NCBI RefSeq assembly: GCF_032444005.1 | Contig: NC_091291.1 | Span: 14,384,001 to 14,448,000, forward strand | Length of the DNA stretch: 64,000 bases | Direction: 5' to 3' | Source of the DNA: Ranitomeya imitator | Lineage: Eukaryota | Made by a program: the position numbers and the translations under genes | Part shown: positions 172-62,695 of the stretch, piece by piece | How the letters are laid out: the number at the start of each line of letters is the position of its first letter | Position numbering within the stretch: position 1 is the stretch's first letter | The notes under the pieces: model-generated | Seen by the model: the letters and a program-made list of their open reading frames with translations, nothing else | The model's database searches: none | Told to the model about the DNA's origin: nothing

Positions 172-453
172 AGGCCAAGTTGAACGTCACGTTCCTGCTG
201 TTCAGGCGGTTTATTATGTTTGTAGCCGTACATATGAAGGATCCGCTGTCATCAGTGGAGACAGGGCTGATAATGAGCGTGGCGTTATTATCGGTGAGGA
301 TATATCGGCCTCCTCCGGATATCGCTGCCCCTTGTAGACTCCACGAGTAGCTGACATTTGTTCCATCAGCCGAACATCGTAGAGACACTGAATCTAATCC
401 AGGCCAGACAAGTCCCGATACATTACTTGTCACCGCGACATTAGAGACCTGGA
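172..453 (-). CDS. Gene C (Ig-superfamily receptor, CEACAM/VSIG10L-like) IgC exon 2; gene continues off the left edge
   Basis: AG acceptor at 455-454, GT donor at 171-170, 282 bp, phase 1/1. VQVSNVAV..LRC..SW..DSGSFIC has the canonical Ig Cys-Trp-Cys. About 97.5% identical to 40561-40842. Confidence 0.9.
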
Positions 454-1479
454 CTGAGATACAAAACACAAAGAAACATAAGAATTTAATGTATTATACT
501 ATATTTGACCTATATGATGCTTTATACTATGTATGAACATCCTCAAGAGTTTAGACACCTGATTCTAGGGATATTGATGTTCCAGCATGAAGAAGGATCC
601 AGCTCCATGAAATAAAAGCTTCTTCATTGGTGAATGGATTTCAGTTAGATGGTTATGACATGTTTTTACTCCCACTAAGTTACAAGACATATGTATAGTC
701 TATTACTGGGCGGTCTGAGACCGACCCGGCTGTCAACGCTTTTCTGCTGTTGGTTAAGGGTGAAAACACCAGAAAAGAGTAAACAGCCAGGTCGGTTTAA
801 GACCACCCAGTCATATACAATGCATATGTCTTATAACTTGGTTATGATGACACATTTTTAATCTCACTATCCAACTGAAATTCTTCACCGATAAAGAAGA
901 TTTTATTTTGTGGAGATGGATCTTCCTTATGGTGTTTCTGCAGACTCCAGGCAAAGACGTTTTTCCGTGCTCCGGAACTAATGGAACATAGATGGATGTG
1001 AGCTGGTCTTTCCAGGTCATACTGCAAACCCACCAGCACCCAAGCAATATTACTAAAAATAATCCATCCCAAACCCTTTTCCTTGTTGTAGGCCAACGTA
1101 GAAGACGCAGTTCAATTCGGTTGTCTAATAATCGTACAAACGTATACAACAAAGACATCCAAGTACAAACTTAATCGTTTAAGGATGGAGTAATTCTAGG
1201 AGGATTTTGATGTGGAAGAATGCAGAATCAGATTCCTCCTCCACGATCCTCGTTTATCAAGTATAAATCTGTACTGCCACTATACATATTGACTATAAAA
1301 ACTAGATTAAAAGTTTAAAGGGATTTTCTAGTTTTGGATTCTAAATTCCGCAGAGTAAAGAAATCTGTAATTTTGCAATATAATTAATTTATTAATTCAT
1401 CTCAATTTTCAAGATATCTGCTTGAAGAAAGTGAGAAGGAATCGGGCTTTACTACATCACCACTGTGAGTCCCCCGCCC

Positions 1480-1785
1480 TGCTCAGTTCTGCTAAATTAC
1501 CATAGCGAGTTTCCTAAAGTACTCAACTCTTTTCCCTGACTGGGCTCTATCCATTGTCACACTGATTATGCTTACCTACTCGATTCTGCTATTCCGCTGG
1601 AGTCTGCTACCTCGTCAGAGCAACCTTCCTGTCCTATTAAACTCTGCTATATCGCTGGGTTCTGCTACATCTTCATAGTGAGTTTCCAGACCTACTCAAC
1701 TCTGCTACGTCGCTGGATTCTGCTATATCCTCATTGTGAGTCTCCAGACCTACTCATTTCTGCTACATCGCTGTCCTCTGCTATG
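1480..1785. repeat. Degenerate 58-bp tandem repeat, about 5 units
   Basis: Units start at 1582, 1640, 1698, 1756 (aactctgcta..cgctgg..ctgcta..gagt.tccagacctactc). Confidence 0.75.
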
Positions 1786-1844
1786 CAACTTGCTATATTT
1801 TTGCGTAGAACTCCATAACATACAATGCTCAATCTCATCATTAA

Positions 1845-2109
1845 GGCTACGTTCACATTAGTGTTGTGCGGTGCTGCGTCGGGCGCAGCCGCAGCGAAGC
1901 ATGCATCATGCGCCCCTATATTTAACATGGGGGCGCATGGACATGCGTTGTGTTGCGTTTTGTGATGCATGCGTCTTTTTTGGCGCAAGCGTCAGGGCGC
2001 AGAGGACGCAGCAAGTTGCATTTTTTTTGTGTCCAAAAGCAAGACAAAAATGGACGCATGCATCACAAAATCCGACGCAACACACAACAACGCAAATGTG
2101 AACGTACCC
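1845..2109. mobile_element. MITE with terminal inverted repeats
   Basis: GGCTACGTTCACATT ... AATGTGAACGTACCC, flanked by TAA on both sides. Confidence 0.7.
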
Positions 2110-2572
2110 TAAGTCTGTTTTGTTCTATTTCGATTCTGCCTCATCAGTCTCCACATGTGAACTTCCAGCTCAATAGTGGACTACTACTCAACTCCTCCGG
2201 TTACCATAAAGAGTCCAAGAGGACTGCCCTCCTACAACAACTGCTGCATTATTACTGCTAACCTAGATCAAAGGATTTGAGGATCCACCTTACCCTAAGG
2301 GATATAATGTTTTTCTTAATAATATGTTATAGTTATTTCTTGCCTTTTACAAGAGGATAAATCTCCTTTCTGTATTTTAAATTCAGGGACGTACTATAAC
2401 AGGTTCAGGGGTTGAACTTGCACCCGAGTCCGGGAGCCTAGGGATTCCAAAGGTCCATTTGGTCCATATGAAAAGACCAATACTATTAAAGATTTGCAAT
2501 AATTGGGGTCCCCATTGGAGGTTTTGCATTGAGACCCATGAGCTTCACTGTTTACATTACATATATTCTTAC

Positions 2573-2848
2573 CGTTCACAATCAGAATCAGGGAGTTGCT
2601 GGTGTTGGAGCTGACAGGGTTTTCAATGGTGCAGGTGTAGGATCCGCCGTCACTCTCCAATATCGGGGCGAAGTCCAGAAATGATCCCCTGCAGATCACA
2701 CGTCCAGAGCAGGTAATCTTTTGACCATTTTGGTAGAAACTGTAAGATGTCACATTCTGGTTCCCGGCATCACACTGGAGGGTCACATTGGTGCCATTAA
2801 TAAGAGGAGTACTGGTAATGGAGCGGAGAGCAGGAGCACTGAGGGGAG
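2573..2848 (-). CDS. Gene C IgC exon 1
   Basis: Acceptor tttctttttcag, donor gtaag, 276 bp, phase 1/1. APLSAPALRS..VTLQC..DGGSYTC. Paralogous to 39149-39424 and 59529-59804. Confidence 0.9.
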
Positions 2849-3361: not shown

Positions 3362-5606
3362 TTTATTTATATAGCGCCAACATATTCCGCAGCGCTTTAC
3401 AAATTATAGAGGGGACTTGTACAGACAATAGACATTACAGCATAACAAAAATCACAGTTCAAAACAGATACCAGGAGGAGTGAGGGCCCTGCTGCTCGCA
3501 AGCTACAAACTATGAGGAAAAGGGGAGACACGAGAGGTGGATGGTAACAATTGCTTTAGTTATTCGGACCAGCCATAGTGTAAGGCTCGGGTGTTCATGT
3601 AAAGCTGCATGAACCAGTTACCTGCCTAAGTATGTAGCAGTACAGACACAGAGGGCTAATAACTGCATAAAGTGAATGAGAACATGATGGAGGAACCTGG
3701 TTATGGTTTTGTTTTGTTTTTTTATAAATAGGCCACACAGGGATCGTTAGGTTAATGCATTGAGGCGGTAGGCCAGTCTGAACAAGTGAGTTTTTAGGGT
3801 ACGCTTAAAACTGTGGGGATTGGGGATTAATCGTATTAACCTGGGTTTTACATTCCAAAGAATCGGCGCAGCACGTGTAAAGTCTTGGAGACGGGAGTGG
3901 GAGGTTCTGATTATTGAGGATGCCAGCCTGAGGTCATTAGCGGAGCGGAGGGCACGGGTAGGGTGGTAGACTGAGACCAGAGAGGAGATGTAAGGTGGTG
4001 CTGAGCCATGGAGTGCTTTGTGGATGAGGGTAGTAGTTTTGTACTGGATTCTGGAGTGGATGGGTAGCCAGTGTAATGACTGGCACAAAATAGAGGCATC
4101 GGTGTAATGGTTGGTGAGGAATATGATCCAGGCAGCAGCATTCAGGACAGATTGGAGCGGGGAGAGTTTTGTAAGAGGGAGGCCGATTAGTAGAGAGTTA
4201 CAATAGTCCAGACGAGAATGAATAAGTGAAACAGTAAGAGTTTTTGCAGAGTCGAAAGTAAGAAAAGGGCGAATTCTAGAAATGTTTTTGAGATGCAGGT
4301 AAGAAGAGCGAGCCAGTGATCGGTTGTGGGGGGTGAATGAAAGGTCAGAATCAAGGATGACCCCAAGGCAGCGGGCATGTTGCTTTGGAGTAATGGTGGA
4401 ACCGCACACGGAGATGGCAATGTCAGGCAAAGGTAGGTTAGTAGAGGGAGAGAACACGAGGAGTTCAGTTTTTGACAGGTTCAGTTTCAGATAGAGGGAG
4501 GACATGATGTTAGAGACAGCGGTAAGACAATCACTGGTGTTTTCTAAAAAGGTCGGCGTGATAACAGGAGAAGAAGTGTATAATTGGGTGTCGTCAGCAT
4601 AGAGATGGTACTGGAAGCCAAATCTACTGATTGTTTGTCCAATAGGGGCAGTATACAAAGAGAAGAGGAGGGGGCCTAGGACTGATCCTTGAGGAACCCC
4701 AACAGTAAGGGGAAGGTGAGAGGAGGAGGAACCAGCAAAACATACAGTGAAGGATCGGTCAGAGAGATAGGAGGAGAACCAGGAGAGAACGGTGTCCTTG
4801 AGGCCGATGGAGCGGAGCATAGTGAGGAGGAGCTGATGATCCACAGTATCGAATGCTGCGGAGAGATCCAAGAGAATTAGCATGGAGTAGTGACCATTAG
4901 ATTTAGCTGTTAGTAGGTCATTAGAGACTTTAGTGAGGGCAGTTTCAGTAGAGTGTAAAGAGCGGAAACCAGATTGAAGAGGGTCGAGAAGAGAGTTATC
5001 TGAGAGATAGCGGGTAAGACGGGAGTGGACCAGGCGTTCGAGGAGTTTAGAGATGAAGGGAAGATTAGAGACAGGTCTATAATTAGCGGCACAGTTTTGA
5101 TCGAGGGATGGTTTTTTAAGTAATGGATGTATGATGGCATGCTTAAATGAGGATGGAAAAATACCGTAAGTGAGAGAAATGTTGAATATTTTTGTTAGGT
5201 GAGAGGTGACAGCCGGGGAAAGGGACTGGAGGAGATGTGATGGAATGGGGTCACTGGTGCAAGTGGTCGGGCGAGAAGATGCAAGGAGCCTGATTACTTC
5301 TTCTGTAAATGGTTCAAAGTCAGAGAGTGAACTAGATGCAGTGGGGGAGGGAGGACAGTGCATGGTATGAAGAGATTGGGAGATGATTTCCTGTCGAATG
5401 TGGTCAATTTTTTCTTTGAAGTAATTGGCCAGATTGTCAGCACGGAGATCCGTGGTTGGGGCCTGCTCTCTTGGGTTGAGTAGGGACTGGAAAGTGTCAA
5501 AGAGACGTTTAGGGTTGTTGGACAGCGAGGTGATTAGGGTGTTGAAATAGGTTTGATTGGAGAGGTGAAGGGCAGAGTTGTATGTTTTTAGCATGAACTT
5601 ATAATG
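3333..5606 (-). mobile_element. 5'-truncated L2 (CR1-group) LINE in the intron between IgV and IgC1 of gene C
   Basis: RT ORF plus 3' UTR ending GGCGCTATATAAATAAAA(TTA)n tail at about 3333-3375. Confidence 0.88.
3747..5594 (-). CDS. L2 reverse transcriptase ORF2 (C-terminal part)
   Basis: [50 protein letters not shown] motifs. Confidence 0.9.
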
Positions 5607-8828: not shown

Positions 8829-9119
8829 CATATACTCCGAGCTGGTAGCTTGTAGTGATAGGAGTAGAAGATTCTGGAGGTACTACAGACAGATCATAAA
8901 TCCCTTCATCAGTGTAGGAGACGTTGTTAATACTCAGGGATCCATTTTCATATAAATTACATCTTCCTACAAACGGATTCAAACAACGTAATGGAGACTG
9001 AATGTACACTGGTGCATTTTTATAATTCCATTGTACGTAGGATCCTACTGGAAAATTCACATTGAATAATACAAGTTTCCCAAGAGTTCCCGACACGTTG
9101 ATGACAGCGGCCACATTAC
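8829..9119 (-). CDS. Gene C N-terminal IgV-like exon (lacks canonical B/F cysteines)
   Basis: Acceptor ttcctatacag, donor gtaagt, 291 bp, phase 1/1. GNVAAVINVSGTLGK..VQW..GSLSINNVSYTDEGIY. Paralogous to the IgV exons of genes A and B. Confidence 0.9.
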
Positions 9120-10164: not shown

Positions 10165-11047
10165 TGTGGCACCCCTAGGGGTATTTGCCACAAAAATAGT
10201 TACTGACACTAAACACAAATATTAAGATAGCAAAACTGCACTACCACCTCCGGCCAGAAGGGGGAGCTCCAGAGACTCCCCTTGATCCATTCTGGTCTGA
10301 GAGAAGAAATGGCAGTTGGGCTAAGGAGCTGAAAGTGAGAGGTCATACAGTTGAATCTCTAACAGCCCTGTGACTGTTACCAGGCCTAAATCACCGGCCT
10401 GAGGAGAAGAGGGATAGAGAAAAAGGACATTGTGAGAACCGGGTAGCATTAATCACTACCCAGAACAGGCGCAAAGACGGATACCGGATCCGTGGCTGTA
10501 TTCATTATATATAATACAGCAACCGGAAAAACGTGAGGTGATATCAGCTTCACTAGGGTCGGACGCAGCAACAGACACAGAGTTCAGCGGTACTCCTGGA
10601 GAGGGTAAGCCGATAAAAGGACTCGGGTTGCCCGTCGAACCAGGACGGGACAGATTGGGCCGGCAGCCAGTTCACATACAGCAGCAGGGCCACACAGATA
10701 TTGCGTACAATAAGAGGCGAAGACCCCGGCAGGGTCAAAGTAACTCAGAGTTCCCATACAGACTCCGGTGACAGGACTGGTTGTAAATCCTTTTTTGTTA
10801 AAGTAAACTGGTTAAACGTTTCAGTGCCTCAGTCTTTCATTTGGACAATAGCCATCTATCCAGGATTGGGATCATCACCGCTGGGAGAACCTGCTGCTGA
10901 TCAAGTAAGTGCCTGTCCCCTCATGATACCCCTTACACTGTGCATTGCCTGAGGCCACAGCACCGGGTCAAGCCACCCGTGACACCCCCCTCAAGAGACA
11001 GACCCCATTGGTCCGGTGCTGGGTACCCCGGTCTCTTGGGCGTCACA
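10165..11047 (+). repeat. 5' LTR copy 1 (883 bp)
   Basis: TGTGGCA...CGTCACA; direct repeat of 17174-18063. Confidence 0.95.
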
Positions 11048-11049
11048 AT

Positions 11050-11067
11050 TGGCGTCACGAACAGGAT
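11050..11067 (+). promoter_or_regulatory. Primer-binding site TGGCGTCACGAACAGGAT (tRNA-Ser(CGA)-like)
   Basis: 2 nt after the 5' LTR. The reverse complement ATCCTGTTCGTGACGCCA matches the 3' end of a vertebrate tRNA-Ser(CGA) as I recall it. Confidence 0.75.
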
Positions 11068-11517
11068 CTAGCCAGCCCGTATACCGGGTATTGTGTGCCG
11101 TGATTGGAGCCCAAAACTGTGAAAACTTGGATGAAAAATCTTGAAAATTGACCTTATTAAAGAAAAATCCATTCTCCATTGAAAACTATTGAAAGTGACT
11201 TTTCCCCATTGGTTATAATGGAGTAAAGATGGCCGCCATCCCCTGAGGTAATCACTTCATAACCGTTAGGCACGAGACTGTTAATTGAGCTACGCCATCA
11301 CCTGAGCCCCAGTCTAACTGAAAAACTTCAGAATCCGCCATTACAGAGCGCGGTGGGTGGGAGCAGCAGGGGGCGTGTCATTGTGGGCGGCACCAAGCTG
11401 AGCGCTCTGACATCAGAGCAAGGGGAAAATCGATCCTGCTGCACAGCGGAACGAATCTACACTATCCCGACGGAAGCGGAGGACCGGAAGGGTCCGGATT
11501 AACTAAGGGGGCACAGT

Positions 11518-12558
11518 ATGTCGCAGCACGGAGACGCCGCAGCACCCGGCAACGCTAATGCAGCTGAAAGACAGAGTGTCAATAGAGAGTCCGGCAGCGC
11601 AGCGGTGCAAGGAGTGGCGCCCATCATGCCGGTGCTGATGCCATATACCCCGGGTGGCCCATGGCTTCCAATGTATGAAGGTGAGCCTAATACCCTTGAC
11701 GATTTCAGAGAAAAGATGCTGGCCCATTTTGACATGTTCCCTGTGGGTGAAGTTCAGCGTGTTAGTCTCCTGATGATGCAGTTAAGTGGCCATGCTAAGC
11801 GAGAAGTCACAGCATGGGCAGCTGATCTAAAAGGCACTGTTGAACGCATATTTGCTGGATTAAAAGCTACATTTGAAACCACTGCCAGCAGCAAAGCTAA
11901 AGTACGATTCTTTAATTGCAAACAAAAAGTTAATGAGGGCGTGAGAGACTTTGCCTTAAACCTGCAGGAAGCCCTTAAATCACTTACACTGGCTGAACCC
12001 ATTTTTAACACCGGAGCGGATAAACTGCTAAGAGATCAATTTATTGAGGGACTCTACACCCCTTCTCACCGGGGGCATGTGAGCATGCTTGTTTTTAAGA
12101 ACCCTGAATTGACATTTGCTCAATTAAAGGAGAGCGCTATACGTCTCCAGCTGGCAGAGGCACCTCAGGATCAGGATCCTGCGCAACCCATGGCAGAGGC
12201 ACCTCAACAACAGGGAGTGCCAGTGACATCAGCTATGTCCGGGGCCATTGCTAAGCCCCTGGGGCCCAGTACTAATGAGGCTCTTCAACAAAAGCTTGAC
12301 TCTTTAACTGATGTTGTTGCTTCAATGGCTAAAACCATGCAGGAGATGAGAGGACCCAAGATGGAGTTGTCAAACCGTAGAGAAGGTGTTCCATGGATGA
12401 GACCCCGGAGATACCCGACATGGAGAGGACGACCTCGCGACCGCTACCAACCGGATGGACAGCCCATTTGCCGCCGTTGCCAGCAGCCAGGCCACTTTGC
12501 ACGAGATTGTGATTTAAACGGGAATCCCCTGGGAATGCGGGCCGCTTCGCAGGAATGA
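11518..12558 (+). CDS. gag: Gag, copy 1
   Basis: 346 aa; retrotransposon capsid-like region (LRDQFIEGL) and CCHC knuckle CRRCQQPGHFARDC. Confidence 0.92.
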   Translation: MSQHGDAAAPGNANAAERQSVNRESGSAAVQGVAPIMPVLMPYTPGGPWLPMYEGEPNTLDDFREKMLAHFDMFPVGEVQRVSLLMMQLSGHAKREVTAWAADLKGTVERIFAGLKATFETTASSKAKVRFFNCKQKVNEGVRDFALNLQEALKSLTLAEPIFNTGADKLLRDQFIEGLYTPSHRGHVSMLVFKNPELTFAQLKESAIRLQLAEAPQDQDPAQPMAEAPQQQGVPVTSAMSGAIAKPLGPSTNEALQQKLDSLTDVVASMAKTMQEMRGPKMELSNRREGVPWMRPRRYPTWRGRPRDRYQPDGQPICRRCQQPGHFARDCDLNGNPLGMRAASQE

Positions 12559-15500
12559 ACTTTCAAGGCCCAACACCCTGGCACGACAGGTACATCGGAG
12601 GACGACCCATTATCCCTATCGTGCTGGACGGAATGCCCCTCAACGCTTTGCTGGACACAGGTTCCCAGATTTCATCTATACCGTATATCCTTTATAAGAG
12701 GTACTGGGCTGATGCAGATATTGATAAAGGGCCCTCTGATGTTGAACTAGATATATGGGCCAGTAATGGTAAGTTGGTACCGAAACTAGGATTCAGGGAG
12801 ATGACCATAAAGATTGGTAAAGTAGAATTGAAGAAACAGGGTATAATTGTTGTTGATGTTGACCGGCGGAACTGTGAACCAACTGTATTGATAGGAATGA
12901 ATGTGTTAGAGAACTGCTTTTCCGAAGTCATTTCTGTCTTACAGCAAATTGCTGAAACTGCCCAATCCTGCCAGCAGAGAGTTCTCCGGAGGGAAATAAA
13001 AGTATTGATGTTAAGGCAACAGGTAGAAGTTGCAGGTGGAGAAATCGGCAGTGTGAGGGTAAGTGATCCAACATCTATTGTAATCCCACCAAAAACAGAA
13101 ATGCTGGTATGGTGTAGAGCAGCCATTGGTACTAAGGGACGAGATTATCAAGCCTTAATAGAACCAGTGTACACCGACAGCAGTCCCACTATACTCACAG
13201 CACGAGGGATAGTCGAGGTACACCGGGGACGAGTGCCGGTACGACTTTTGAACTGTGGAGAGGAAGAGGTCACTTTGCCAAGGTATGCTACAATGGCAAA
13301 GCTATATACTGTTGACAACAATGCCATCACAACCATTGAGCCCTTAGAACCAACCTGTCAGGTGGAAGGCAATGGCTCAGATGGAGAAATGGAGGATTGG
13401 TGCCAACAGCTACACGTGGGCATAAATTCAACACCTACCCATCAAAAACAAGGGGTGTATAGGCTAGTGACGGAATATGAACAAGTCTTCAGTAAACACC
13501 CATTGGACTTCGGACGGATAGAAGGGGTAGAACACACAATCCCCACCAGTGACCATCCCCCAATAAAAGAAAGATATAGACGCATACCGCCCGCTCACTA
13601 TCAATGTGCAAAAGATATGCTGAGGGAGATGAAACAGGCCGGGGTAATAAGAGACAGCTGTAGCCCCTGGGCGGCCCCTCTAGTGATTGTCAAAAAAAAG
13701 GACGGAACCATGAGAATGTGCGTAGACTACCGGAAGATTAATAACATCACCCATAAAGACGCCTACCCCTTGCCTAGGATAGAAGAGTCCTTAACTGCTT
13801 TGAAATCTGCTAATTATTTTTCCACCTTAGACTTAACAAGCGGGTATTGGCAAGTCCCTGTGGCTGAGCGAGATAAGGAAAAGACGGCATTCACCACACC
13901 AATGGGTCTATGTGAATTTAATCGCATGCCGTTCGGACTCTGCAACGCATCCGGTACCTTCCAGCGGCTGATGGAATGCTGCCTCGGACACAAGAACTTC
14001 GAGACCGTCCTCCTGTACCTAGATGATGTGATCGTCTACTCAAAGACTTACGAACAACACTTAATAGACCTGGCAGAAGTGTTCGAAGCCTTATCCAGGT
14101 ATGGCATGAAAGTCAAGCCATCCAAATGTCACCTTCTCAAGCCAAAGGTACAGTACCTGGGACACATCGTGAGTTCGGAGGGAGTAGCACCAGATCCCGA
14201 GAAAATAAGCGCCATAAGGGATTGGCCAAGACCTACCAGCGCAAAAGAGGTGAGACAATTCCTGGGATTGGTGGGTTACTATCGCAGATTTATAAAAGGA
14301 TTTACCAAGTTGGCAGCACCCTTGCAAGACACCTTGGTAGGGCAGACGAAGAAACCTTCAAACCGAAACCCTCCTTTTCAGTGGAACGACGAAAGGGAAG
14401 ACTCCTTTGAACAACTAAAGAAGGCACTAACCGGAGAAGAGGTTCTGGCGTACCCAGATTACCATCAACCTTTCATCCTCTACACCGATGCCAGTAATGT
14501 GGGACTAGGAGCGGTGCTGTCACAAAAGCAAGAAGGTCGGGAGAAAGTCATCGCCTTTGCAAGTAGAAAGCTCCGGCTTACTGAAAGAAATTCAGAAAAT
14601 TACAGCTCCTTCAAATTGGAACTACTGGCAGTAGTTTGGGCTGTGACTGAACGTTTCAAACACTATCTGGCCGCTGCAGAATTTATTGTCTATACTGACA
14701 ACAATCCGTTGACCCACCTGGACACAGCCAAATTAGGTGCGTTAGAACAGCGATGGATAGCCCGGTTATCTAATTACAACTTCAAGATCAAGTATCGAGC
14801 AGGTCGCAAGAATGGAAATGCCGATGCCCTATCCCGGATGCCACACTTGAGAGATGTAGAAGAAGAAATGGGGGAGCTTGAAGAAATTGAACTACCAGCC
14901 TTCCATCATCCCAAGGCAAAACATCATCAGTCAAGTACCTATCAGAAACAACAAGAGGTGAATTTTAATCCGTTAGCACACCATAGATGGGCTGACACCC
15001 AAGACAGCAATCCGGCTGTGAAGTTGGTGAAGGAACTGTTAACTGAGCAAAGTGCATATCCCGATGAGGATGCCCCAGAAGAGACGCATCAACTCTGGAA
15101 AGAGAGAGGCAAAATGTTCCTGTATCAAGGGAAGCTCTGTAGAAGGTACACCAATCCGAAAACACATGAATTGGTTTGGCAGATTATCGTGCCTAAACAA
15201 GATGTCAAGATGGTCCTCGAAGCTTACCATAATGGTGCTGGTCACTTCGGTTGGAAAAAGTTAGAAGTACTTCTAAGAGAAAGATTTTATTGGGTCGGGA
15301 TGAGAAAATCAATCGAACAGTGGTGCAGAAATTGTGGCCCGTGCAACCTCAGAAGAAACGATCAAAAGAACCAAAGAGCACCACTGCAGCCCATAATCAC
15401 CAAACAACCACTTGAACTTGTAGCCATGGACCACGTGAAGTTGACACCAAGCCGGTCTGGCTATGTCTATGCCTTGACCATCGTGGACCATTATTCACGC

Positions 15501-16691
15501 TTCTTGGTAGTAGTACCCGTAAAAGATCTGACAGCAAAAACAGCAGCCAAAGTGTTCCAAACGTACTTTTGTAGACCCCATGGATATCCGGAACAGGTTC
15601 TCACCGACCAAGGTACAGCCTTTGAATCAGAGATCTTCAGAGAATTCTGTAATATGTATGGTTGCAAAAAGATCCGGACGACGGCCTATCATCCACAAAC
15701 AAACGGCTTATGCGAGAAGATGAACCATATTGTAATAGACCTACTAAAGACTTTACCTGAGACAGAAAGGAATCAATGGCCAGAGAAATTGCCTGACTTG
15801 GTGGATCTGTATAATCATGTCCCGGTGAGTTCCACCAATTGCACCCCAGCTTACCTTATGCGTGCAAGACCCGGCCAATTACCAATCGATCTAGAAATGG
15901 GAATTCTGAAACCAGACGCAGAAGTTCAAGACTCCAATTGGGATATCATACGGCAAAAGCAGTATCGCCAAGTGCAAGAGAGTGTGGAAAGAAGCCTTCA
16001 GCAAACTAGAGAAAGACAAGAGCGAACTTTCAACCAGAATGCTCTAGCGACCCCATTAAGACCAGGTGACCAAGTGCTCAAGAGAAATCGTCGAACCAAT
16101 AAACTGGACAATCAGTGGGAAGCCGTACCCTACACAGTTTTACCAACAAGAGTGGATAATCCTAAAATGTGTCTCATTAGCAAAAACGGAGGCTTAACAT
16201 CTGTACTAGTGTCAAGAGACAATCTTAAATTATGTCCGGAAGCATTGAAAGAGCCAGAAGTTGTCCAGCCAGAACCAGAAGTTATTCAACCCATACAGGT
16301 TCAACCAGTAAAGGAAAAAGAAGAGGAAGTGTATCACACCTGTATAGGAGACTTTCCCAAAACCCTACTAACATACCATGGTGCAGTAGTGGTTCCCATG
16401 GTGGCCTTTTACCCAACACCGAACCCAATACCAGAAGTCCCAAGACAGGAAGAGGCTGACCCCGTACTACAGGAGGTTCCAGGCAAGGAAGAACAGATTC
16501 CTGATCAGAGTAATCCCATTCACGGTGGATTTGCCAACTCCATAGTCGTGGAATTATCTTTAGCAGAGCGGGCAGATACTACATCCGCTGTAGACAGTAG
16601 TACACCACATGAAGAGACACCGCTATTACGTAGATCACAGCGTAGTACCCAGGGTCAATTACTGGCCAGGTATGCAGATTACCAACTATAA
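12555..16691 (+). CDS. pol: Pol (protease-RT-RNase H-integrase), copy 1, -1 frame relative to gag
   Basis: LLDTGS, YLDD, LYTDAS, HHCC zinc finger, D-D-E (AMDH, TDQG, CEKMN); 1378 aa open. Confidence 0.96.
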   Translation: MNFQGPTPWHDRYIGGRPIIPIVLDGMPLNALLDTGSQISSIPYILYKRYWADADIDKGPSDVELDIWASNGKLVPKLGFREMTIKIGKVELKKQGIIVVDVDRRNCEPTVLIGMNVLENCFSEVISVLQQIAETAQSCQQRVLRREIKVLMLRQQVEVAGGEIGSVRVSDPTSIVIPPKTEMLVWCRAAIGTKGRDYQALIEPVYTDSSPTILTARGIVEVHRGRVPVRLLNCGEEEVTLPRYATMAKLYTVDNNAITTIEPLEPTCQVEGNGSDGEMEDWCQQLHVGINSTPTHQKQGVYRLVTEYEQVFSKHPLDFGRIEGVEHTIPTSDHPPIKERYRRIPPAHYQCAKDMLREMKQAGVIRDSCSPWAAPLVIVKKKDGTMRMCVDYRKINNITHKDAYPLPRIEESLTALKSANYFSTLDLTSGYWQVPVAERDKEKTAFTTPMGLCEFNRMPFGLCNASGTFQRLMECCLGHKNFETVLLYLDDVIVYSKTYEQHLIDLAEVFEALSRYGMKVKPSKCHLLKPKVQYLGHIVSSEGVAPDPEKISAIRDWPRPTSAKEVRQFLGLVGYYRRFIKGFTKLAAPLQDTLVGQTKKPSNRNPPFQWNDEREDSFEQLKKALTGEEVLAYPDYHQPFILYTDASNVGLGAVLSQKQEGREKVIAFASRKLRLTERNSENYSSFKLELLAVVWAVTERFKHYLAAAEFIVYTDNNPLTHLDTAKLGALEQRWIARLSNYNFKIKYRAGRKNGNADALSRMPHLRDVEEEMGELEEIELPAFHHPKAKHHQSSTYQKQQEVNFNPLAHHRWADTQDSNPAVKLVKELLTEQSAYPDEDAPEETHQLWKERGKMFLYQGKLCRRYTNPKTHELVWQIIVPKQDVKMVLEAYHNGAGHFGWKKLEVLLRERFYWVGMRKSIEQWCRNCGPCNLRRNDQKNQRAPLQPIITKQPLELVAMDHVKLTPSRSGYVYALTIVDHYSRFLVVVPVKDLTAKTAAKVFQTYFCRPHGYPEQVLTDQGTAFESEIFREFCNMYGCKKIRTTAYHPQTNGLCEKMNHIVIDLLKTLPETERNQWPEKLPDLVDLYNHVPVSSTNCTPAYLMRARPGQLPIDLEMGILKPDAEVQDSNWDIIRQKQYRQVQESVERSLQQTRERQERTFNQNALATPLRPGDQVLKRNRRTNKLDNQWEAVPYTVLPTRVDNPKMCLISKNGGLTSVLVSRDNLKLCPEALKEPEVVQPEPEVIQPIQVQPVKEKEEEVYHTCIGDFPKTLLTYHGAVVVPMVAFYPTPNPIPEVPRQEEADPVLQEVPGKEEQIPDQSNPIHGGFANSIVVELSLAERADTTSAVDSSTPHEETPLLRRSQRSTQGQLLARYADYQL

Positions 16692-44810: not shown

Positions 44811-45004
44811 GTAAGTCACGTCTGATGAATATATCATTTTCAATCTGACTACCATGAATAAGCTAATATGGGCGGGTATCCAACTGTGATCCATACTCTA
44901 TCATGACCCCCTGATGATAAGAAGATCACAGCAATTAGTTGTTATTTGTGGGAGATATCAGCATCAGCTGCTCAATTTCCCTACAGTGACTACACAGGGG
45001 ATAT

Positions 45005-47072: not shown

Positions 47073-47183
47073 GTGGTGGTTCTAGTAGTGGACTGGACGG
47101 TGGGGCGATCGCCGGGATTGTTATAGGAGTACTTGCTGGTGTTGCATTAATAGGAGTCATCGCATTCTTCATATTGAAGAAAC
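47073..47183 (+). CDS. Gene A transmembrane exon GGGSSSGLDGGAIAGIVIGVLAGVALIGVIAFFILKK
   Basis: ctttattttctag acceptor, gtatgt donor, 111 bp phase 1/1; about 23 hydrophobic residues followed by KK. Missed by the ORF track. Confidence 0.9.
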
Positions 47184-48539: not shown

Positions 48540-48543
48540 TTAA

Positions 48544-48838
48544 AGGGACACTGTCACCTGAATTTGGAGGGAACAATCTTCAGCCATGGAGGCGGGGTTT
48601 TGGGGCTTTTGATTCACCCTTTCCTTACCTGCTGGCTGCAATATTGGATTGCAGTTCATTCTCTGTCCTCCGTAGTACACGCCTGCGCAAGGCAAGATTA
48701 CCTGTACTACGGAGGACAGAGAATGAACTTCAATCCAATATTGCAGCCAGCGGGTAAGGAAAGGGTGAATCAAAAGCCCCAAAACCCCGCCTCCATGGCT
48801 GAAGATTGTTCCCTCCAAATTCAGGTGACAGTGTCCCT
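48544..48838. mobile_element. Near-perfect palindromic TTAA MITE (295 bp)
   Basis: TTAA|AGGGACACTGTCACC ... GGTGACAGTGTCCCT|TTAA; arms of about 130 bp. Confidence 0.9.
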
Positions 48839-49025
48839 TTAATGTCAGTAATTCTAGATTATTGCTTCAGTGATTGTCTACATTAAAGCATTGCTGAGTA
48901 ACCCTTCTTTGATATATGTAATCTGAAAGCTAGCAGATACTTGCAAATTGCAGTTAATATACAAATATTAATTTATTGCGCATTTTTATTGTATTATATC
49001 TATTTTTTATTCATTATTTAATCAG

Positions 49026-49105
49026 GTAAAATCCCAGAAGCAGCATATGAAGATCCAGATTTTCCAACACCACACGTTTATGAAACTAAACTTCCAGAAA
49101 TAACG
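49026..49105 (+). CDS. Gene A cytoplasmic exon RKIPEAAYEDPDFPTPHVYETKLPEIT
   Basis: T-rich acceptor ending atcag, donor ACG|gtaatg, 80 bp phase 1/0; in frame with the TM exon; two tyrosine motifs. Confidence 0.7.
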
Positions 49106-49628: not shown

Positions 49629-49816
49629 GGCCGGGATCACACATACGCAAGATACGGCCGAGTCAGGTGAAAACTCAGGTCTGGCGCCGGCACTCCGGAG
49701 CAGAGCTTGCAGCTCCATGTATTGCTGTGCAGCTGCATGCTCCGCTCCGGAGTGCCGGCGCCAGACCTGAGTTTTCACCTGACTCGGCCGTATCTCGCGT
49801 ATGTGTGATCCCGGCC
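49629..49816. mobile_element. Palindromic MITE inserted at the CR1 tail
   Basis: GGCCGGGATCACACATACGC ... GCGTATGTGTGATCCCGGCC. Confidence 0.85.
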
Positions 49817-50088: not shown

Positions 50089-50845
50089 CAGTCGTAACCA
50101 GAATTTTCCATCTACTATATAAAAAGACACATCTGCAGGTTTTTCTCAATTTCTGACATGAAATGAGAATAAACCTTTCCCGTGTAAGGTCAATTAGGAT
50201 TACCATAATTATTCATATTTGCCAAATGCCAGAATAATGAAAGATAGAGAATGGTTTAAGGATTTTTATGACATACTGCAAAGTCAAAAGTTTACAGACA
50301 TTAAGATTACTATGGATTTAAACAATTCTGGAATGTCCATATGATGATGTCATGTGTTTGATAGTTTTTTTGACAACATCTGAGTTAATTAGAGACACAC
50401 GTGGGTGTATTTTAATGCACACCTGAAACACACTGCTTCTTTGTGTAGCATCATGGGAAAGTCTCAAGAAATCAGCCACGATATCAGGAAGATAATTGTG
50501 GACTTTCACAAGTCTGGCTCATCCTTGGGTACAATTTCAAGATACCTGAGGATGCCTAATTCATCTGTACAAACAATTATACGCAAGTACAAACAAGCTA
50601 GCAATGTGCAGTCATCATACTGCTCAGGAAGGAGATGGGTACTGTGTCCCAGAGATGAACTTGCTTTGGTCCGATATGTGCATATTAACACAAGGACAAA
50701 AGCAAATGACTTTGTGAAGATTATGGCGGAAGTTGGTAAGATTGTGTCAATATCCACAGAGAAATGAGCACTGTATCAACATGGGCTGAAAGGCCACTCT
50801 GCCACAAAGAAGCCATTACTCCAAAAGGAACAAAAAAACAAACAG
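50089..50845 (+). mobile_element. Tc1-like transposon 5' remnant
   Basis: TA|CAGTCG start; MGKSQEISHDIRKIIVDFHKSG..SVQTIIRKYK..SGR from 50453, with a premature stop. Confidence 0.8.
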
Positions 50846-51358
50846 ATTAATATTTGTTGGCCAGCATAACTACATGTGGGGGTTGCCTGGTTTATAGGGA
50901 ATCCCCACATGTACTTATGCTGGCTATCAGATGTAAATCATTCAGATGCGTCAATAAAAACGACATTTCCGAGCACTAAAGAATACTCGAAGGACCCCCA
51001 AGCATGCTCGGGAAATCTCGAGTAACGAGTATATTCACTCATCACCTTTTTTTTTTAGTATTTAGCGCAGATAAACTTGCAGCAACTTTATTAACCTAGG
51101 GGGTAAAAATAGCTCCACAGTAAAGAAATTTTTTTTTTCCATTCGTTTCAAGGAGAACAAAACACCACCAAGAAAGGAAGAAGGAAATTATCAGGTAACC
51201 TAATTTATTGGGGTAGGGTTTTTTTTTGTCTGCTTTAGAAAAATATATACCTGGCCGGATCATAGAGGGAATATACACATAGTGCAGAGATGGCCAAAAA
51301 GATTTGTTGTTATCATACAGTAAATCCATGAAAGACCACAAGTCTCTCCAATAATCAG

Positions 51359-52569: not shown

Positions 52570-52990
52570 GTGTACAATGGCCAACGCCAGAAGTTTAGGA
52601 AACAAAATGAGAACTGGGTGCTGGAGGATCTGAAACAGGATATTATTAAGTTACCGTCTTGTGAGCTGTTTTGCAAAGAAAGTCATGTAAACGCAATGAT
52701 TTGTGCTCGCCTCTCATTACTGATTCGTTTTTTCCCCTCCATTACAGGAATTAACACATGGCAATAAATCAGTATACCACACTGTGATGCCAGGCGCTGG
52801 AAGATAACCGAAATAATATAGCACAAGCAGTGCGCCCCTCTACGGTCCATTATCTGCTCTGCTACAATGTACCGTCTCCTCCCGTTGTACAAAGTCTTTG
52901 CAATGGATTTTGCGATGTTATGTAACTACCGCTTTCTTGGGAAATTCCAAAAGTGAGCAAAACTACAAAGCGAGCGCAGAATTGTAGCTT
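52570..52990 (+). mobile_element. Decayed CR1 endonuclease fragment
   Basis: ANARSLGNKM resembles the CR1 ORF2 start motif (TNARSLGNK). Confidence 0.4.
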
Positions 52991-55669: not shown

Positions 55670-57944
55670 GCTTTTTTTTCTCTGGAGCCTAAAAAAATAT
55701 GAATAAAAAACTGCAGTTGCTTTTTAAGTGCAGAATCAAAGCTTTTCTGTGCTATAAAAAAACACATTAAAAATGCAGCTTTACATCTGCTCCAGAAACT
55801 CATCAAATAAGGGGAAGAAGATTGTTATTGTGTAGGTCGGTGTGGACACCAGCAGAAAAAAAAAACACATTATTTATGCTACATGTGAACACAGCCTGAT
55901 ACAATAAAGCCAGATGTCATGTAGTGAAGCTACATAAAGTTGAGAATGTTCTGGCGGCTAAAGCTGTGATTGAATGAACACAAAATAAATCCAAAAAGTC
56001 CCAACTAGAGATGAGCAGGACACACAGCTGGCTAATCAAAACCTGCGCCGGGGACGCCAGATGGTCAGAGATTTGCAGCCTCCTGTCCAGCCACCAGCTG
56101 CCACTGATCTAGACGCTGGACCAGAGACTCGTGAATTGATCCACTCATCTCTAGTCCCAACTGTTCCAGATACAGTGGACAGTACTTGGTCTGGTCTACA
56201 CCCTGCTGTCTTTGGCGTCTGCTGAATTTTTCTCACTGCCATCATCCCTCTGACATCTGCTCCTGCCAGGGGATAAAGGAAAGGTAAATGGGCAAAAATT
56301 GGGGCAGGGCCAGACTGGCCATCTGGCAATTCTGGGAAATGCCCGAAGGGACTGTTTGGTTATGGGCTGCCTTGTCTGCTACCTTGTTAACAGAATCGGT
56401 GCTCTCAAGACACCCATACTGTTAAGAGTTGTGATGGAGCTGCTGACTCCGTCACTTACCCCAGCAGGCCACGGGTATCAATAGAAATATTGATCTTGTA
56501 AAAAAACTTCCTTTCCTCTATCCAGGGTAGTATTAATAATATATCCCATCTGGTTCATGGGGATGGGGACAACATGGGCCTGTGTCAATTCAAATGTCAG
56601 GACTGAATTACATCCCCAGTCTGTACCAGGATTGGGGTGTGGCTTAGTACCCCACAAGTCACACTGTACATCCATGCACAAGGCACTGTAGTAGCAAGAA
56701 TGTAAATAAAAACGTGTTTTTCATCTTTTTTTATCAACTTTGTTGTGGAGATGCAGGGCACTGATATTATTGTTGCCAAATACACTAATTTTCTTATCAA
56801 TTTAATCAGGTTTTCATTTTGTTTATCTCTGTGGGCGTGTACTTTCACCCCACTATGACATTGTCCAATCATAAAAAGACAGCTTCCATAGAGAGGAAAA
56901 AGGACACGCCCACAGTTCTGACCAAAATGAAACATCCAAAGAGAAGGTCAGAACTGTGCCAGCGTGATCGTGCAAGACTTTATCTATCATCCCCTCCGGC
57001 ACTTGCTTTTAGTAAAGTGATGGGAGAGGCGGTGACTGCAACATCAGAGTGATGGAATAGCTGGAAGATGAAGGACTGTCACGGGATTAGCTGAGGACGA
57101 GGAGAGCAGACCTACTACAGGTAAATATCACACTGACACGGCACCTTCTTTATGGGTATTTCATTATCTTCAGAACTGTTGACGTCTACTTTTTCCTCCT
57201 TAAAATGCTTACTTCTTATAATTGGACAGTCATAGTGAGGTGAAAGTACAAACCCACAGAGCTAGATCAGATGTAATGCCCTGTTGATTGATAAGAAAAT
57301 TATTATACTTGTCATCAGTTATTTCAGTACTCTGTACCTCTATAATAAAGTGGAGAAACAAGAGCGATTCAATGTTTTCATGTACATGCTTAGTACTATG
57401 TACAGGAATATACTGTTCCTAAGGTCACAATTTGTGAATGGTTATCGTTAACTAGAGACAATAATTCTTCATGGAAACTATAAATGACTAGGTGAAATTA
57501 AAGTACTGTCTTAGCATAAAATTTGCCACAGAATTCCTCACACGCCACAGTATGTGTTCTTTATAGAGAAAATGGGAGGTAGGAAAAAAAAGGATGTTGA
57601 AGTGAAGCCAAAAAAGCCACTTTATTATTCAGAGAACATGGGCTATAATGACCACTCATTATAACTTTCTGAGAATCTGGGCAGCGATGCAAAATCTATA
57701 ACAGACCCATATTCCACACTGAACATGATCAAGTTCTGAATTAGCATCTTCCAATGTGGGAGAAGGTTCCTCTGGTTGAACATTTTTGGTTGAGATTCTT
57801 CGACTTTCCTCCCTTATACCGCCAGCAGAGGGCAGGTGGCACTGACGATACATGAGACGGAAGCTCATTAGAATAAATGTAGGACAGGAACTTTTAGAAG
57901 AATTCGAAGGTGGGATATTCTCCCCGATCCTTGGAGCCTCTGAG

Positions 57945-57990
57945 ATGAATCTCATATTACTACTGGGCGCTGTCTTATTCCTGGGCTTAG
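57945..57990 (+). CDS. Gene B signal-peptide exon
   Basis: Identical to 28534-28579; donor gtgaga. Confidence 0.85.
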
Positions 57991-58083: not shown

Positions 58084-58377
58084 GTGATGTGGCCGCTGAC
58101 ACCATCGTGACGGGAACTCTTGGGAAACTTGTATTATTCAGTGCGAATGTTCCAGTAGGATCCTACGTACAATGGACTTATAACAGTGCACCAGTCTATG
58201 TTCAGTCTCCAACTTTTCGTTGTTTGAATCAGTTTATAGGAAGATGTAATTCATATGAAAACGGATCCCTGAGTATTAACTACATCTCCTACACTGATGA
58301 AGGGATTTATGTTCTGTCCATAATACCTCCAGATTCTTCTACTGTTATCTCTACAAACTACCAGCTCAGAGTATATG
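58084..58377 (+). CDS. Gene B IgV-like exon
   Basis: 294 bp phase 1/1, AG/GT bounded; 14 of 98 aa differ from gene A. Confidence 0.9.
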
Positions 58378-59528: not shown

Positions 59529-59804
59529 CTCCCCACAGTGCTCCTGTTCTCCGCTCTATTACCAGTACTCCTCTTATTAATAGCACCAATGTGACCCTCC
59601 AGTGTGATGCCGGGAGCCAGACTGTGACTTCTTACACTTTCTACCGAAATGGTCAGAAGATCATCTGCTCTGGACGTGTGATCTGCAGGGGATCATTCCT
59701 GGACTTCACCCCGATATTTGAGAGTGATGGCGGATCCTACACCTGCACCATCCAGAACCCTGACAGCTCCCACATCAGCAACTCCCTGAGTCTGACTGTG
59801 TACG
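59529..59804 (+). CDS. Gene B IgC exon 1
   Basis: 276 bp, AG/GT bounded, paralog of 39149-39424. Confidence 0.9.
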
Positions 59805-60256
59805 GTAAGGATATAGAAAATGGGAAATGCGGTATATTAAAACCTATAACCATTTACTCCTTTTTTACTCCAAAAGCCCTCAGTAGTGAGGGCGCTCACC
59901 TCTAAATAGATTTACTACCAGTTGCGTCACCAGTTCCAACATGGCCTCCAACCATTGCAAGTCTTTAGTACTAATGACCTTCCATATGGGCTAAAGGGAC
60001 CTTTAGGACCCCCCTAGACTCCAAGGTGGGGGTGCAATTGCAACCCCTGCACCTATTATAATTATGCCACTGTTTGACACATCTTTAGCAATGTTGCTTG
60101 TTGGTCATAGTTTGGCAAATATGGACATGAGGGGGAATAAAAGCACCCTTAGCCAGAATACCAATTCTGAGGATGTGTATATGCGGTCTATTATATTGTG
60201 ATCATTCTAAGCTTTTACAATCCAACCTTTATGTTTCTTTGTGTTTTGTATCTCAG

Positions 60257-60538
60257 TTCCGGTCTCTAATGTCGCGGTGACAAGTAATGTATCGGGACTT
60301 GTGTGGCCCGGATTAGATTCAGTGTCTCTACGATGTTCGGCTGATGGAACAAATGTCAGCTACTCGTGGAGTCTACAAGGGGCAGCGATATCCGGAGGAG
60401 GCCGATATCTCCTCACCGATAATAACGCCACGCTCACTATCAGCCCTGTCTCCACTGATGACAGCAGATCCTTCATATGTACGGCTACAAACATAATAAA
60501 CAGCCTGAACAGCAGGAACGTGACGTTCAACCTGGCCT
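60257..60538 (+). CDS. Gene B IgC exon 2
   Basis: 282 bp, AG/GT bounded, 2 aa differences from gene A. Confidence 0.9.
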
Positions 60539-61582
60539 GTAAGTAGCACATCACGTCTGTCATTATAGTCTGTAATTTACGTAGGAAGGAATACAAAAGC
60601 ACAGAAAGCAGCTCAACAACAGGTTTTTTTTTCACAAAATGGCAATGTGCTTGCTGGTGTCCACTGTATTTAAAGATATAACAGTTTGAGCTAAACAGAG
60701 GTAGTTGCTTTTTACATAGCCGCCGACGAGTGGGGGCACCATATCGTAGAAACTAAGGGTGCCAACCCCCACTCATAGGTAGTGCATCCATTAGGGCATA
60801 TTCGTCCATGCATTTTGTGATTTATTTTTGCTCCCTCAGGGGGTTATTTGTTCCCCTATAGCCCTAATTTTTCACTTTTTCACATATATATTTTTTCATT
60901 CTTTTTCGTATGTTGTATATTGTCTGCGGTATGTCCTTTTAACTTATACTTGTGATACTTTTAAACTTCTTAATAAACGTTACATTTTAAGGGGTCATTT
61001 TTTTTTTGTTTTGTCCTTAGGTGGGACCTCACCCTATAGCTTTTTTTTTGGTCCTAACAATCAAACTCTCTCTTTTGTGCCTATGTCTTTTTTCCAGTAT
61101 AGGAGACTAATTCTCATCTGTCCACCAGATGCAATCTTCTCTAACATGAGCAAGAAAAATTGTGAAGACAAAAAGCGCAATAGGGTCTTTTCCGAAAAGA
61201 AACATGGAGACAAAAGGGAGTTATGCTCACCTGATGGGGACGGGTTGTGAAGTCACAACCCCTGTACGTGTGAAACTGGGGACGAGTGGGTTAAAAATGT
61301 TAACAAGAAATAAAGAAATGCAGTTTACTGGTCAACAAATTTCGAAGTGAAGCGAATATTTAAATGCCTTAAAATAATTTCTTACTCTTCATTATACATT
61401 AGAAAAACCTTGATTAACGTTTTATTTATTTTGGAAGAAATTACTAAGGAACTTTAATAACTAATAATTCAGAGAAACTCTAATACAGATGTCAAAAACG
61501 AAATTTTCCCATGGCAGAAAGCAGCGAGGTTTCTGAGCTTTTATTGATGGCTTCTCATATTCATCGTTGGTGTTTTTCACAG

Positions 61583-61876
61583 CTCCGGTTTCGGCAGTGA
61601 CGCTGTACAGTCTCATATCAACAGGGATCTGGGCAGGAGAGGATTTGGCACATTTCTATTGCTCAGCTCAGGGTTCAGCCATCACCTTCTCCTGGAGTCT
61701 GAATGGAATCCTAATGTCTGCGAATCCTCCATACCACATTAATCAGGGCGATTCTCCTCCAAACTCCAATTTCCTCATCATCCCCGTTTCCGAGACCGAC
61801 AATGGACTAATCATCTGCAAAGCCTCCAACAGAGCTAATAGTTTGAACAGTAGTTCAGCCAACATCAATATCAACT
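61583..61876 (+). CDS. Gene B IgC exon 3
   Basis: 294 bp, tgtttttcacag / gtgagt; paralog of 41464-41757. Confidence 0.9.
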
Positions 61877-62455
61877 GTGAGTAACACTTCTGCTCTTTCA
61901 ATGGAATAAATCCAATCTATTAATCTAATCAATCTGTCTACCTGTCATAAAACAGTGGCCCACTGCACTTAATGGTTACAGTTCACATTGCGCGGCACTA
62001 TGTGCTTGATGGTTGCAGTTACACGTGCTTTATGAGACACTTGAAGGCTTCAAAACTTCAGTTCTTCTGCCAGGACCATAATTACCATATGATACTCCAC
62101 AAGGTTGATCGTAACGTGACTGCTAATTTTTGCTCACCCTCCGTTTCCATAGTGGGTCTTTGTGAGTCAACCCATTGCTACAGCTGGACCTAATTAGGTC
62201 CTCGTACCAAGATAATCTGTGAGATAAGAGATAGGTAGCTAATTGGATAGATTGATCTGGTTGATGTGGAAATGATTGGTACTTTTTCCTTAATCTACAT
62301 TGCTTTTTTGGATTTTTGAATTCGATCCCTTGCCACGGTGTGTTGACCCTCTTTGGTGAATCCTTGTGATAATCTACCATGTGGAATAGGAAATAGGTAG
62401 ATATATAGATATTGTTAATAATATGTGTTTATTGCACCTATCCTGTAAATTCCAG

Positions 62456-62695
62456 GGTCTCCCGATGGGAAAATTGTCTGTACTGTGCAACCCATAAACC
62501 AGACAGTACAGCTCGGCTGTTCCTGGCCCAGAGGAAAACCGGCAGCCAATGTCACCATGATATTTGGTGATGTCCAAAATACAAGCACTAATGAAGTGTT
62601 CAGAAATGTGAGCTCTACCGGTAATATCCACGGGCACAGTCTCTCCTGTAATGGTAACCAGCTCGGAAGAGCCTCAAGCTGCCTGGTAACATTGG
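62456..62695 (+). CDS. Gene B IgC exon 4; gene presumably continues off the right edge
   Basis: 240 bp, ttccag / gtaag; WSPDGKIVC..QLGCSWPRGKP. Confidence 0.85.

Follow-up and report, generated by a model that had tools for sequence, protein, structure and literature searches.

Three spliced CEACAM-family genes with opposing tail types at a locus of the mimic poison frog Ranitomeya imitator

Gene Content and Annotation of the Locus

The stretch of DNA considered here comprises 64,000 nucleotides of the mimic poison frog Ranitomeya imitator (contig NC_091291.1 of the RefSeq assembly GCF_032444005.1, positions 14,384,001 to 14,448,000 of the forward strand; hereafter the window, within which positions are counted from its first letter). 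The DNA is vertebrate in character, rich in transposon remnants and free of runs of N, and it holds three spliced and expressed genes of the CEACAM family, one inhibitory and two of activating type, which lie in the order C, A, B along the forward strand. The original prediction, made from the letters alone, had described the genes as hidden, but all three are already in the NCBI annotation and the family is already known from Xenopus. In the public assembly, the locus lies on CM064368.1 of GCA_032444005.1, where the sequence agrees with that of the window base for base: gene B is XP_069597697.1 (P0159) and gene C is XP_069597696.1 (P0160), both named “CEACAM1-like” and both in agreement exon for exon, and between genes C and B the annotation calls a product of 715 residues, from 28441 to 52807 of the window, which is gene A. 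When the peptides of every gene A exon were compared with the window by sensitive tblastn, no additional immunoglobulin (Ig) exons came to light; no extra genes were found in the window, and no non-CEACAM gene in the 10 kb of flank examined.

Gene A lies on the forward strand (+). Its leader, a signal peptide (exon 1, 28534-28579), is followed by an IgV-like N domain (exon 2, 28673-28966), a CEACAM A-type IgC domain (exon 3, 39149-39424), two Ig domains of I-set/Ig_3 type (exon 4, 40561-40842, and exon 5, 41464-41757), a short C2-type Ig domain of 78 residues with a CSWPGGKP motif (exon 6, 42251-42487), a membrane-proximal I-set Ig domain (exon 7, 44478-44810), the transmembrane (TM) segment (exon 8, 47073-47183), and a first cytoplasmic exon (exon 9 or Cyt1, 49026-49105), which is entered in phase 1, left in phase 0 and carries the tyrosines of YEDP and YETK. 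These nine exons had been listed before and do add up to the 1953 nt then claimed; the proposed end of the gene at 49105, after 651 codons, is on the other hand a splice donor, beyond which two more tail exons follow. Exon 10 (Cyt2, 51153-51194) consists of 14 codons ending in EEGNYQ, the first half of a split YxxL, and exon 11 (Cyt3, 52748-52807) begins with EL, contains SVYHTV and runs to a TAA stop at the annotated gene end, reading ELTHGNKSVYHTVMPGAGR before the stop. Both were located via the tail of a Ranitomeya variabilis protein (P0002), and both have AG/GT borders and are in phase 0. The coding sequence amounts to 2055 nt, or 684 residues from the ATG at 28534, and 31 upstream codons bring the product to 715 residues, which is the annotated length with the same end, so that exons 10 and 11 agree with the annotation. 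The in-frame ATG that opens these 31 codons before the signal-peptide ATG occurs in gene A (28441-28533) as well as in gene B (57852-57944); it is the start of the annotated 715-residue product of gene A and of CAJ0928383.1, XP_069597697.1 uses the second ATG, and in both genes the 31-codon extension would bury the signal peptide.

As predicted, and as reading of the exons confirmed, gene B stands in tandem with gene A (+ strand) and gene C is inverted (- strand). Gene B comprises a leader that is 100% identical to that of gene A (exon 1, 57945-57990), an IgV N domain (exon 2, 58084-58377), and exons 3 (59529-59804), 4 (60257-60538), 5 (61583-61876), and 6 (62456-62695, 240 nt), after which the gene continues past the right end of the window. 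In gene C, the leader (MDYYKNVLPLFLLLGLS-G) is exon 1 at 20074-20125, followed on the same strand by the IgV N domain (exon 2, 8829-9119), exon 3 (2573-2848), and exon 4 (172-453), the other exons, including the tail, lying left of the window. No leader was found next to exon 2 of gene C; the true one, absent from the earlier list just as exons 10 and 11 of gene A were, sits beyond a long terminal repeat (LTR) element, 11 kb upstream. Compared with gene A, exon 6 of gene B is longer and exon 2 of gene C shorter, each by one whole codon. Every exon listed by the original prediction is present, with an AG acceptor, a GT donor, phase 1, and no internal stop or frameshift, and the general plan is that of a separate leader, one phase-1 exon per Ig domain, a TM exon, and small cytoplasmic exons.

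Just outside the window, at L001:16980 (about position 64,924), gene B is approximately 288 bp shorter than gene A, the loss covering the 3′ 188 nt of exon 7, its donor, and roughly 100 nt of intron. In RefSeq, the model of gene B runs through this point to a stop and gives a product of 557 residues with no TM segment, the TM and tail exons being still present downstream. Exon 7 is intact in CAJ0928383.1, the gene B product in another R. imitator assembly, and the loss is to be explained either by a deletion allele or by a difference between assemblies.

Splicing of the Predicted Exons

Parts of the interval 39120-44900 are contained in 11 public runs, and the contigs of four, each from a separate study, were aligned to it. 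Contig coverage is concentrated on the exons, most introns having practically none, and the GT..AG joints found in the contigs (39424>40561, 40842>41464, 41757>42251, and 42487>44478) are the predicted junctions of exons 3 to 7. Two contig pieces across exon 7 of gene A have zero mismatches. Upstream, a loose contig end before 39148 is made of the last 30 nt of gene A exon 2, and as these 30 nt are peculiar to gene A, they show that the 10-kb intron 2 is removed by splicing. A second loose contig end joins the end of gene C exon 2 to gene C exon 3, and contigs that extend past 44812 run on into a TM-like paralogue exon.

Domain Architecture

Pfam places exon 2 in the V-set family (2.5e-7) and exons 3, 4, 5, and 7 in Ig_2, Ig_3, or I-set (1e-7 to 1e-13, with Ig_2 at 5e-12 for exon 3), and gives a weak Ig_2 match for exon 6. 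None of the three N exons encodes a Cys at the B or F position; strand F reads DEGIYVL or DEGIYDL, which is the D-x-G-x-Y-x-L pattern of CEACAMs, and W30, R53, and D71 are shared by the three copies, as are two other Cys placed eight residues apart in a CxxxxxxxC loop. When the N domain was compared with PDB as a single sequence, the top 23 matches were all CEACAM (best E value 0.0027), and 26 of the 28 matches of an N-domain profile were CEACAM N domains (best E value 4.5e-4), so that by sequence, if with weak scores, the IgV domain without the B-F disulfide has its best matches of solved structure among CEACAM N domains. An AlphaFold (AF2) model of the N domain adopts a V-set fold (predicted local distance difference test score, pLDDT, 90). 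Along its entire length, exon 3 can be aligned with the CEACAM A-type domain (CEA, 3.6e-21; CEACAM1 A1, 2.7e-13), and exons 5 and 7 come out as generic I-set domains in the same comparison.

Opposing Tail Types

The tail of gene A follows the plan (1)Cyt1(0)Cyt2(0)Cyt3, with exon 9, exon 10 ending in EEGNYQ, and exon 11 opening with ELTHGNKSVYHTV. Its motif, E-x-x-Y-Q|E-L-x7-Y-H-T-V, resembles an immunoreceptor tyrosine-based activation motif (ITAM), in which a phase-0 intron interrupts the YxxL; the gene B product in the other R. imitator assembly (CAJ0928383.1, P0238) has a tail as in gene A. The tail of gene C, as read in protein P0160, carries VVYAEI, VKYASL, and TIYSDV, that is, two immunoreceptor tyrosine-based inhibitory motifs (ITIMs) and one immunoreceptor tyrosine-based switch motif (ITSM); its last exon lies outside the window, at L002:58874-58990.

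Both tails have published counterparts. In Xenopus, the group-1 Ceacams are divided into members with ITIMs (Ceacam301/302/325) and members with ITAM or ITAM-like tails (Ceacam303/304/315/328/332) (Zimmermann and Kammerer 2016, PMC5112662). The ITAM-like members show the plan (1)Cyt1(0)Cyt2(0)Cyt3, with a 14-residue Cyt2 of the form EN...YQ and a Cyt3 that begins with EL (PMC5112662, Additional file 1), and the phase-0 split of their YxxL has been called characteristic (PMC5112662). The three-exon ITAM-like tail with phases (1)(0)(0) and split YxxL is thus shared with the window, and so is an ITIM/ITSM last exon of the form VKYAxL...ETxYSxVK: in alignment, VKYASL...ETIYSDVK of gene C stands against VKYADL...ETEYSTVK of Xenopus Ceacam301 and VSYASV...ETIYSEIK of opossum CEACAM1.

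Relatives in Anurans and Likeness to Known CEACAMs

Searched with a profile of the three N domains, a collection of 1.84 billion proteins yielded 175 matches, the best of which are proteins of hyloid frogs named CEACAM5-like, CEACAM1-like, PSG-like, hemicentin-1-like, or VSIG10-like. The spliced gene A protein was searched exon by exon, and genes B and C via their equal database proteins. A word-index protein search with the N exon alone came back empty, which carries no weight as to absence because its length filter leaves out full-length relatives. The best full-length match, P0002 of R. variabilis, is the nearest relative of genes A and B, and a search with it recovered about 90 proteins, mostly anuran, among them two R. 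imitator RefSeq proteins and proteins of Ascaphus, Discoglossus, Leptobrachium, Rana, and Hyperolius; the weakest matches include fish proteins, a single gecko protein, and some generic Ig superfamily members. P0002 matches the Xenopus tropicalis “CEACAM1” (P0067) at 1.8e-171 and XP_031762394.1 at 2.4e-117, and the tail of P0067 is the published Ceacam303-type Cyt1 sequence. Annotated neobatrachian models such as R. variabilis XP_077115977.1 and Hyla sarda XP_056398458.1 agree with the window genes in architecture and carry the same pair of tail types, under automatic names (CEACAM1-like, CEACAM5-like, PSG-like, hemicentin-1-like, or VSIG10-like); apart from Xenopus, we found no study of the family. 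The module formed by exons 6 and 7 is present in anuran homologues from Ascaphus to the hyloids and was not found in Xenopus P0067, and a word-dependent region search with these two exons matched only anuran CEACAM-like proteins.

Three models from Rhinoderma and Phyllobates (P0001, P0003, and P0157) are giant “hemicentin-1-like” or uncharacterized proteins of 1449-2645 residues with several N-like domains, at least one of them (P0157) having two TM/tail units. They look like adjacent CEACAM genes fused by the annotation pipeline.

Beyond the tails, the window genes share with the Xenopus group-1 Ceacams a disulfide-less IgV N exon, phase-1 Ig exons, a separate leader exon, the opposite orientation of inhibitory and activating genes, and a likeness that is confined to exons while introns are unalignable. 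They differ in that the R. imitator N domain is only about 32% identical to that of P0067, and in that the ectodomain has five further Ig domains, including the short C2 (exon 6) and I-set (exon 7) domains. With mammalian CEACAM1 and CEACAM3 they share the D-x-G-x-Y-x-L of strand F and the lack of a B-F disulfide, followed by an A-type IgC domain, as well as the pairing of an inhibitory ITIM + ITSM member with a partner of ITAM-like, endocytic YxxL-x7-Yxx(M/V) type; gene conversion between paralogues has also been reported for mammalian CEACAM1/CEACAM3 as for the frog genes. Identity of the mammalian N domains to those of the frog genes is, however, 20-25%, and in place of the full six-domain ectodomain of frog A and B, CEACAM3 has one N domain only.

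Both tail types are kept in Hylidae, Leptodactylidae, Rhinodermatidae, dendrobatoid frogs, and Ranidae. A maximum-likelihood tree of N domains groups ITIM and ITAM-like partners by species and not by tail, and the N domains of such partners share 98% identity in H. sarda and 94% in both Leptodactylus fuscus and Dendrobates tinctorius. Likeness of N domains on opposing tails within a species is the published signature of receptor and decoy, maintained by gene conversion, and in Xenopus pairs the ligand-binding domains on opposing tails are 80-93% similar (PMC5112662).

Mosaicism and Divergence among the Three Genes

Within the window, identity among the genes changes abruptly from exon to exon. 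Exon 4 is 97.5-99.3% identical among A, B, and C at the DNA level, with a synonymous divergence (dS) of 0.014-0.06; for gene C this identity is 97.5% (dS 0.04-0.06) even though alignment of its introns with those of A or B breaks down some 30 nt away from each exon. The promoter, leader, and intron 1 of gene A are about 99% identical to those of gene B, whereas its exons 5-7 are 85-93% identical to those of gene C and 65-79% to those of gene B (93% against 65% at the amino acid level for exon 5). With a B-like 5′ part and C-like exons 5-7, gene A is a mosaic, and the exchange of sequence has occurred at the scale of exons.

The N exon stands apart in this pattern. Genes A and B are 91% identical there in DNA and 86% in amino acids, against about 99% over the 300 nt upstream, which amounts to 26 differences in 294 nt versus 4 in 300 nt (p = 2e-5), and the ratio of nonsynonymous to synonymous divergence (dN/dS) of the N exon, 0.86-2.2, is the highest of any exon. 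In the window, the stalk exons (exons 3 and 4, and exons 5-7 for A and C) are homogenised and the N exon is the most divergent, which is the reverse of what is seen for Xenopus ceacam301/303. Since the family is multi-copy and mosaic, the genes are not plain 1:1 orthologues of a conserved single-copy gene, the outcome that had been named as a refutation of the original prediction.

A second type of N domain, 24-27% identical to the type found in the window, occurs in other dendrobatoids (P0161, P0162, P0165, P0169, P0170, and P0151), on nearly the same stalk and tails as the first. Judged by exons 6-7 and tail, gene C has its closest relatives in R. variabilis, D. tinctorius, and P. terribilis, and these have the type-2 N domain where R. 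imitator gene C has type 1, which points to the swapping of whole N exons or to alternative N exons.

A Candidate Receptor/Counter-Receptor Set and Its Alternatives

From these features, it seems probable that the window belongs to the CEACAM locus of R. imitator and encodes a receptor/counter-receptor set of type I membrane proteins; a lineage-expanded locus of CEACAM-like genes, possibly of paired or pathogen receptors, had been proposed before, and the opposing CEACAM tail types together with the CEACAM A-type exon 3 lend support to it. Each gene product would consist of a leader, a disulfide-less IgV N domain, five Ig domains, a TM segment, and a tail with tyrosine motifs. The inverted gene C would be the CEACAM1-like inhibitory member, predicted to recruit SH2 phosphatases when its N domain is engaged, and the tandem genes A and B, with an ITAM-like (endocytic) tail of the CEACAM3 or Xenopus Ceacam303 type, could turn engagement of the same or a similar ligand into an activation signal or into uptake. 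The paralogues would exchange sequence by exon-scale gene conversion or recombination, possibly favoured by the inverted orientation, and the N exon, which presumably encodes the ligand face, would evolve with a dN/dS near or above 1. The signalling polarity, a ligand that may be homophilic, heterophilic, or a pathogen adhesin, and any role as pathogen decoy are what we infer, by likeness, from the known systems.

Several observations weigh against this interpretation. In sequence, the N domain is only weakly similar to its mammalian CEACAM counterparts (best E value 4.5e-4); Foldseek matches the N-domain model equally well to 2B4, CD84, CD58, and CEACAM; and exons 6 and 7 have no CEACAM-specific match in PDB, where exon 6 has no significant match of any kind, its best weak one being SYG-2. 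The N domain of gene C is 70-72% identical to those of A and B in the window, below the 80-93% of published pairs, and gene C may therefore not be the functional partner of A or B. Furthermore, pairwise tests for an excess of dN over dS in the N exon fall short of significance (best p = 0.10), half of exon 7 is missing from gene B as assembled here, and the distal tyrosine (SVYHTV) of the A and B tails could also be read as part of an ITIM, which makes their signalling polarity less than certain. Finally, the label of RNA for the aligned runs is a guess; we take them to be RNA because DNA would not yield spliced contigs.

Two other assignments of the genes can be considered. SLAM/CD2 proteins have a two-domain ectodomain of V-C2 type. 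Membership in this family in place of CEACAM is, in our view, very improbable, even though CD2/SLAM proteins likewise have disulfide-less N-terminal V domains and ITSM tails, an ITSM is present in gene C, Pfam gives a faint Receptor_2B4 match (E value 0.12), and Foldseek puts the V domains of 2B4, CD84, CD58, and CD48 slightly above CEACAM N domains. Because these structural matches are equally good, the fold does not separate the two families, and it is sequence, architecture, and tail exons that decide: sequence searches rank CEACAM N domains first (4.5e-4 to 0.02, against 0.11-0.63 for CD48/SLAMF5), the window genes have a V domain plus five Ig domains and not V-C2, exon 3 fits the CEACAM A domain at 1e-13 to 1e-21, and the exon plan and motifs of the tails match the published Xenopus and opossum CEACAM tails. 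The CEACAM names could also be mere automatic best-hit labels on adhesion molecules akin to VSIG10/VSIG10L or HEPACAM, or on a stalk of that kind joined to a CEACAM head. The short exon 6 (CxWPGGKP) and the I-set exon 7, neither with a CEACAM-specific match, would be in keeping with this, as would the name “VSIG10-like” that NCBI gives to two Leptodactylus orthologues and the failure to find the exon 6-7 module in Xenopus CEACAM P0067. We nevertheless hold it to be improbable, for the head (N domain and exon 3) and both tail types are CEACAM-like, the word-dependent search with exons 6-7 matched anuran CEACAM-like proteins and no VSIG10/10L, and the GGxP motif is generic to C2-set domains.

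A different question is whether genes of the CEACAM family at this locus are under pathogen pressure at all, as they might be ordinary homophilic adhesion or regulatory molecules shaped by concerted evolution alone, with no receptor/decoy function. That no dN/dS is significantly above 1 and that the N domain of gene C is only 70-72% identical to A and B would suit such a history, and Zimmermann and Kammerer describe clades without signs of pathogen use (PMC13278318). On the other side stand the conservation of opposing tails across several neobatrachian families, combined with within-species N domains that are 94-98% identical, and the dN/dS of the N exon, the highest of all exons, in view of which we regard this explanation as rather unlikely.

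If the window does belong to a receptor/counter-receptor set, the CEACAM receptor/decoy design, known from mammals, Xenopus, and recently reptiles, would extend to the neobatrachians, which make up the majority of amphibian species and were named as the next group to examine by the authors of the Xenopus study (PMC5112662). Given the heavy pathogen pressure on frogs, a fast-exchanging pair of inhibitory and activating receptors would be a reasonable candidate for host–pathogen studies. For the window itself the practical yield is modest, as the genes are real, expressed, and already annotated, in a known family. Two features are possibly unreported, although we would put this at somewhat less than an even chance, namely the membrane-proximal C2 + I-set module of anurans and a receptor/decoy pair that is out of register in R. 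imitator. The short C2 (CxWPGGKP) and I-set module may occur in CEACAMs across the anurans, Ascaphus and Discoglossus as well as hyloids and ranoids, and be lacking from mammalian CEACAMs and from the one Xenopus CEACAM examined, in which case the ancestor of frog CEACAMs would have been chimaeric, with a CEACAM head on a different Ig superfamily stalk. As to the pair, gene A may be a recent recombinant, with promoter, leader, and N exon like B, exons 5-7 like C, and an ITAM-like tail, and the N exons of R. imitator may have been spared the homogenisation that those of Hyla, Leptodactylus, and Dendrobates show.

Mobile Elements in the Introns

Two copies of a Ty3/gypsy LTR retrotransposon, 98.6% identical to each other and with TG...CA LTRs, are inserted on the + strand of the window. 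Copy 1 (10165-18063) lies antisense in intron 1 of gene C, with LTRs 98.0% identical; copy 2 (29679-37582) lies sense in intron 2 of gene A, with LTRs 99.1% identical and a TTAT target duplication, and is spliced out of the gene A transcript, as the contig joint across that intron indicates. Each copy encodes an intact 346-residue gag with a zinc knuckle and a 1378-residue pol with protease, reverse transcriptase, RNase H, and integrase, and no env-like open reading frame was seen in either. Their flanks have no shared homology, and the two copies are thus independent recent insertions.

Intron 2 of gene C further contains, at 3747-5594 (-), a LINE-like open frame of 615 residues that includes a reverse-transcriptase domain (RVT_1, 5e-36). 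Remnants of Tc1/mariner-type transposases (HTH_Tnp_Tc3_2, DDE_3, Sleeping Beauty HTH) lie between genes C and A, at 21913-22892 (-), and in a tail intron of gene A, at 50405-50767 (+). The 3′ introns of gene A also hold near-perfect short inverted repeats at 48540-48842 and 49629-49816, whose arms of 140 nt and 89 nt are 99% and 96% complementary, and, at 45002-45919, a nest of direct and inverted repeats resembling miniature inverted-repeat transposable elements.

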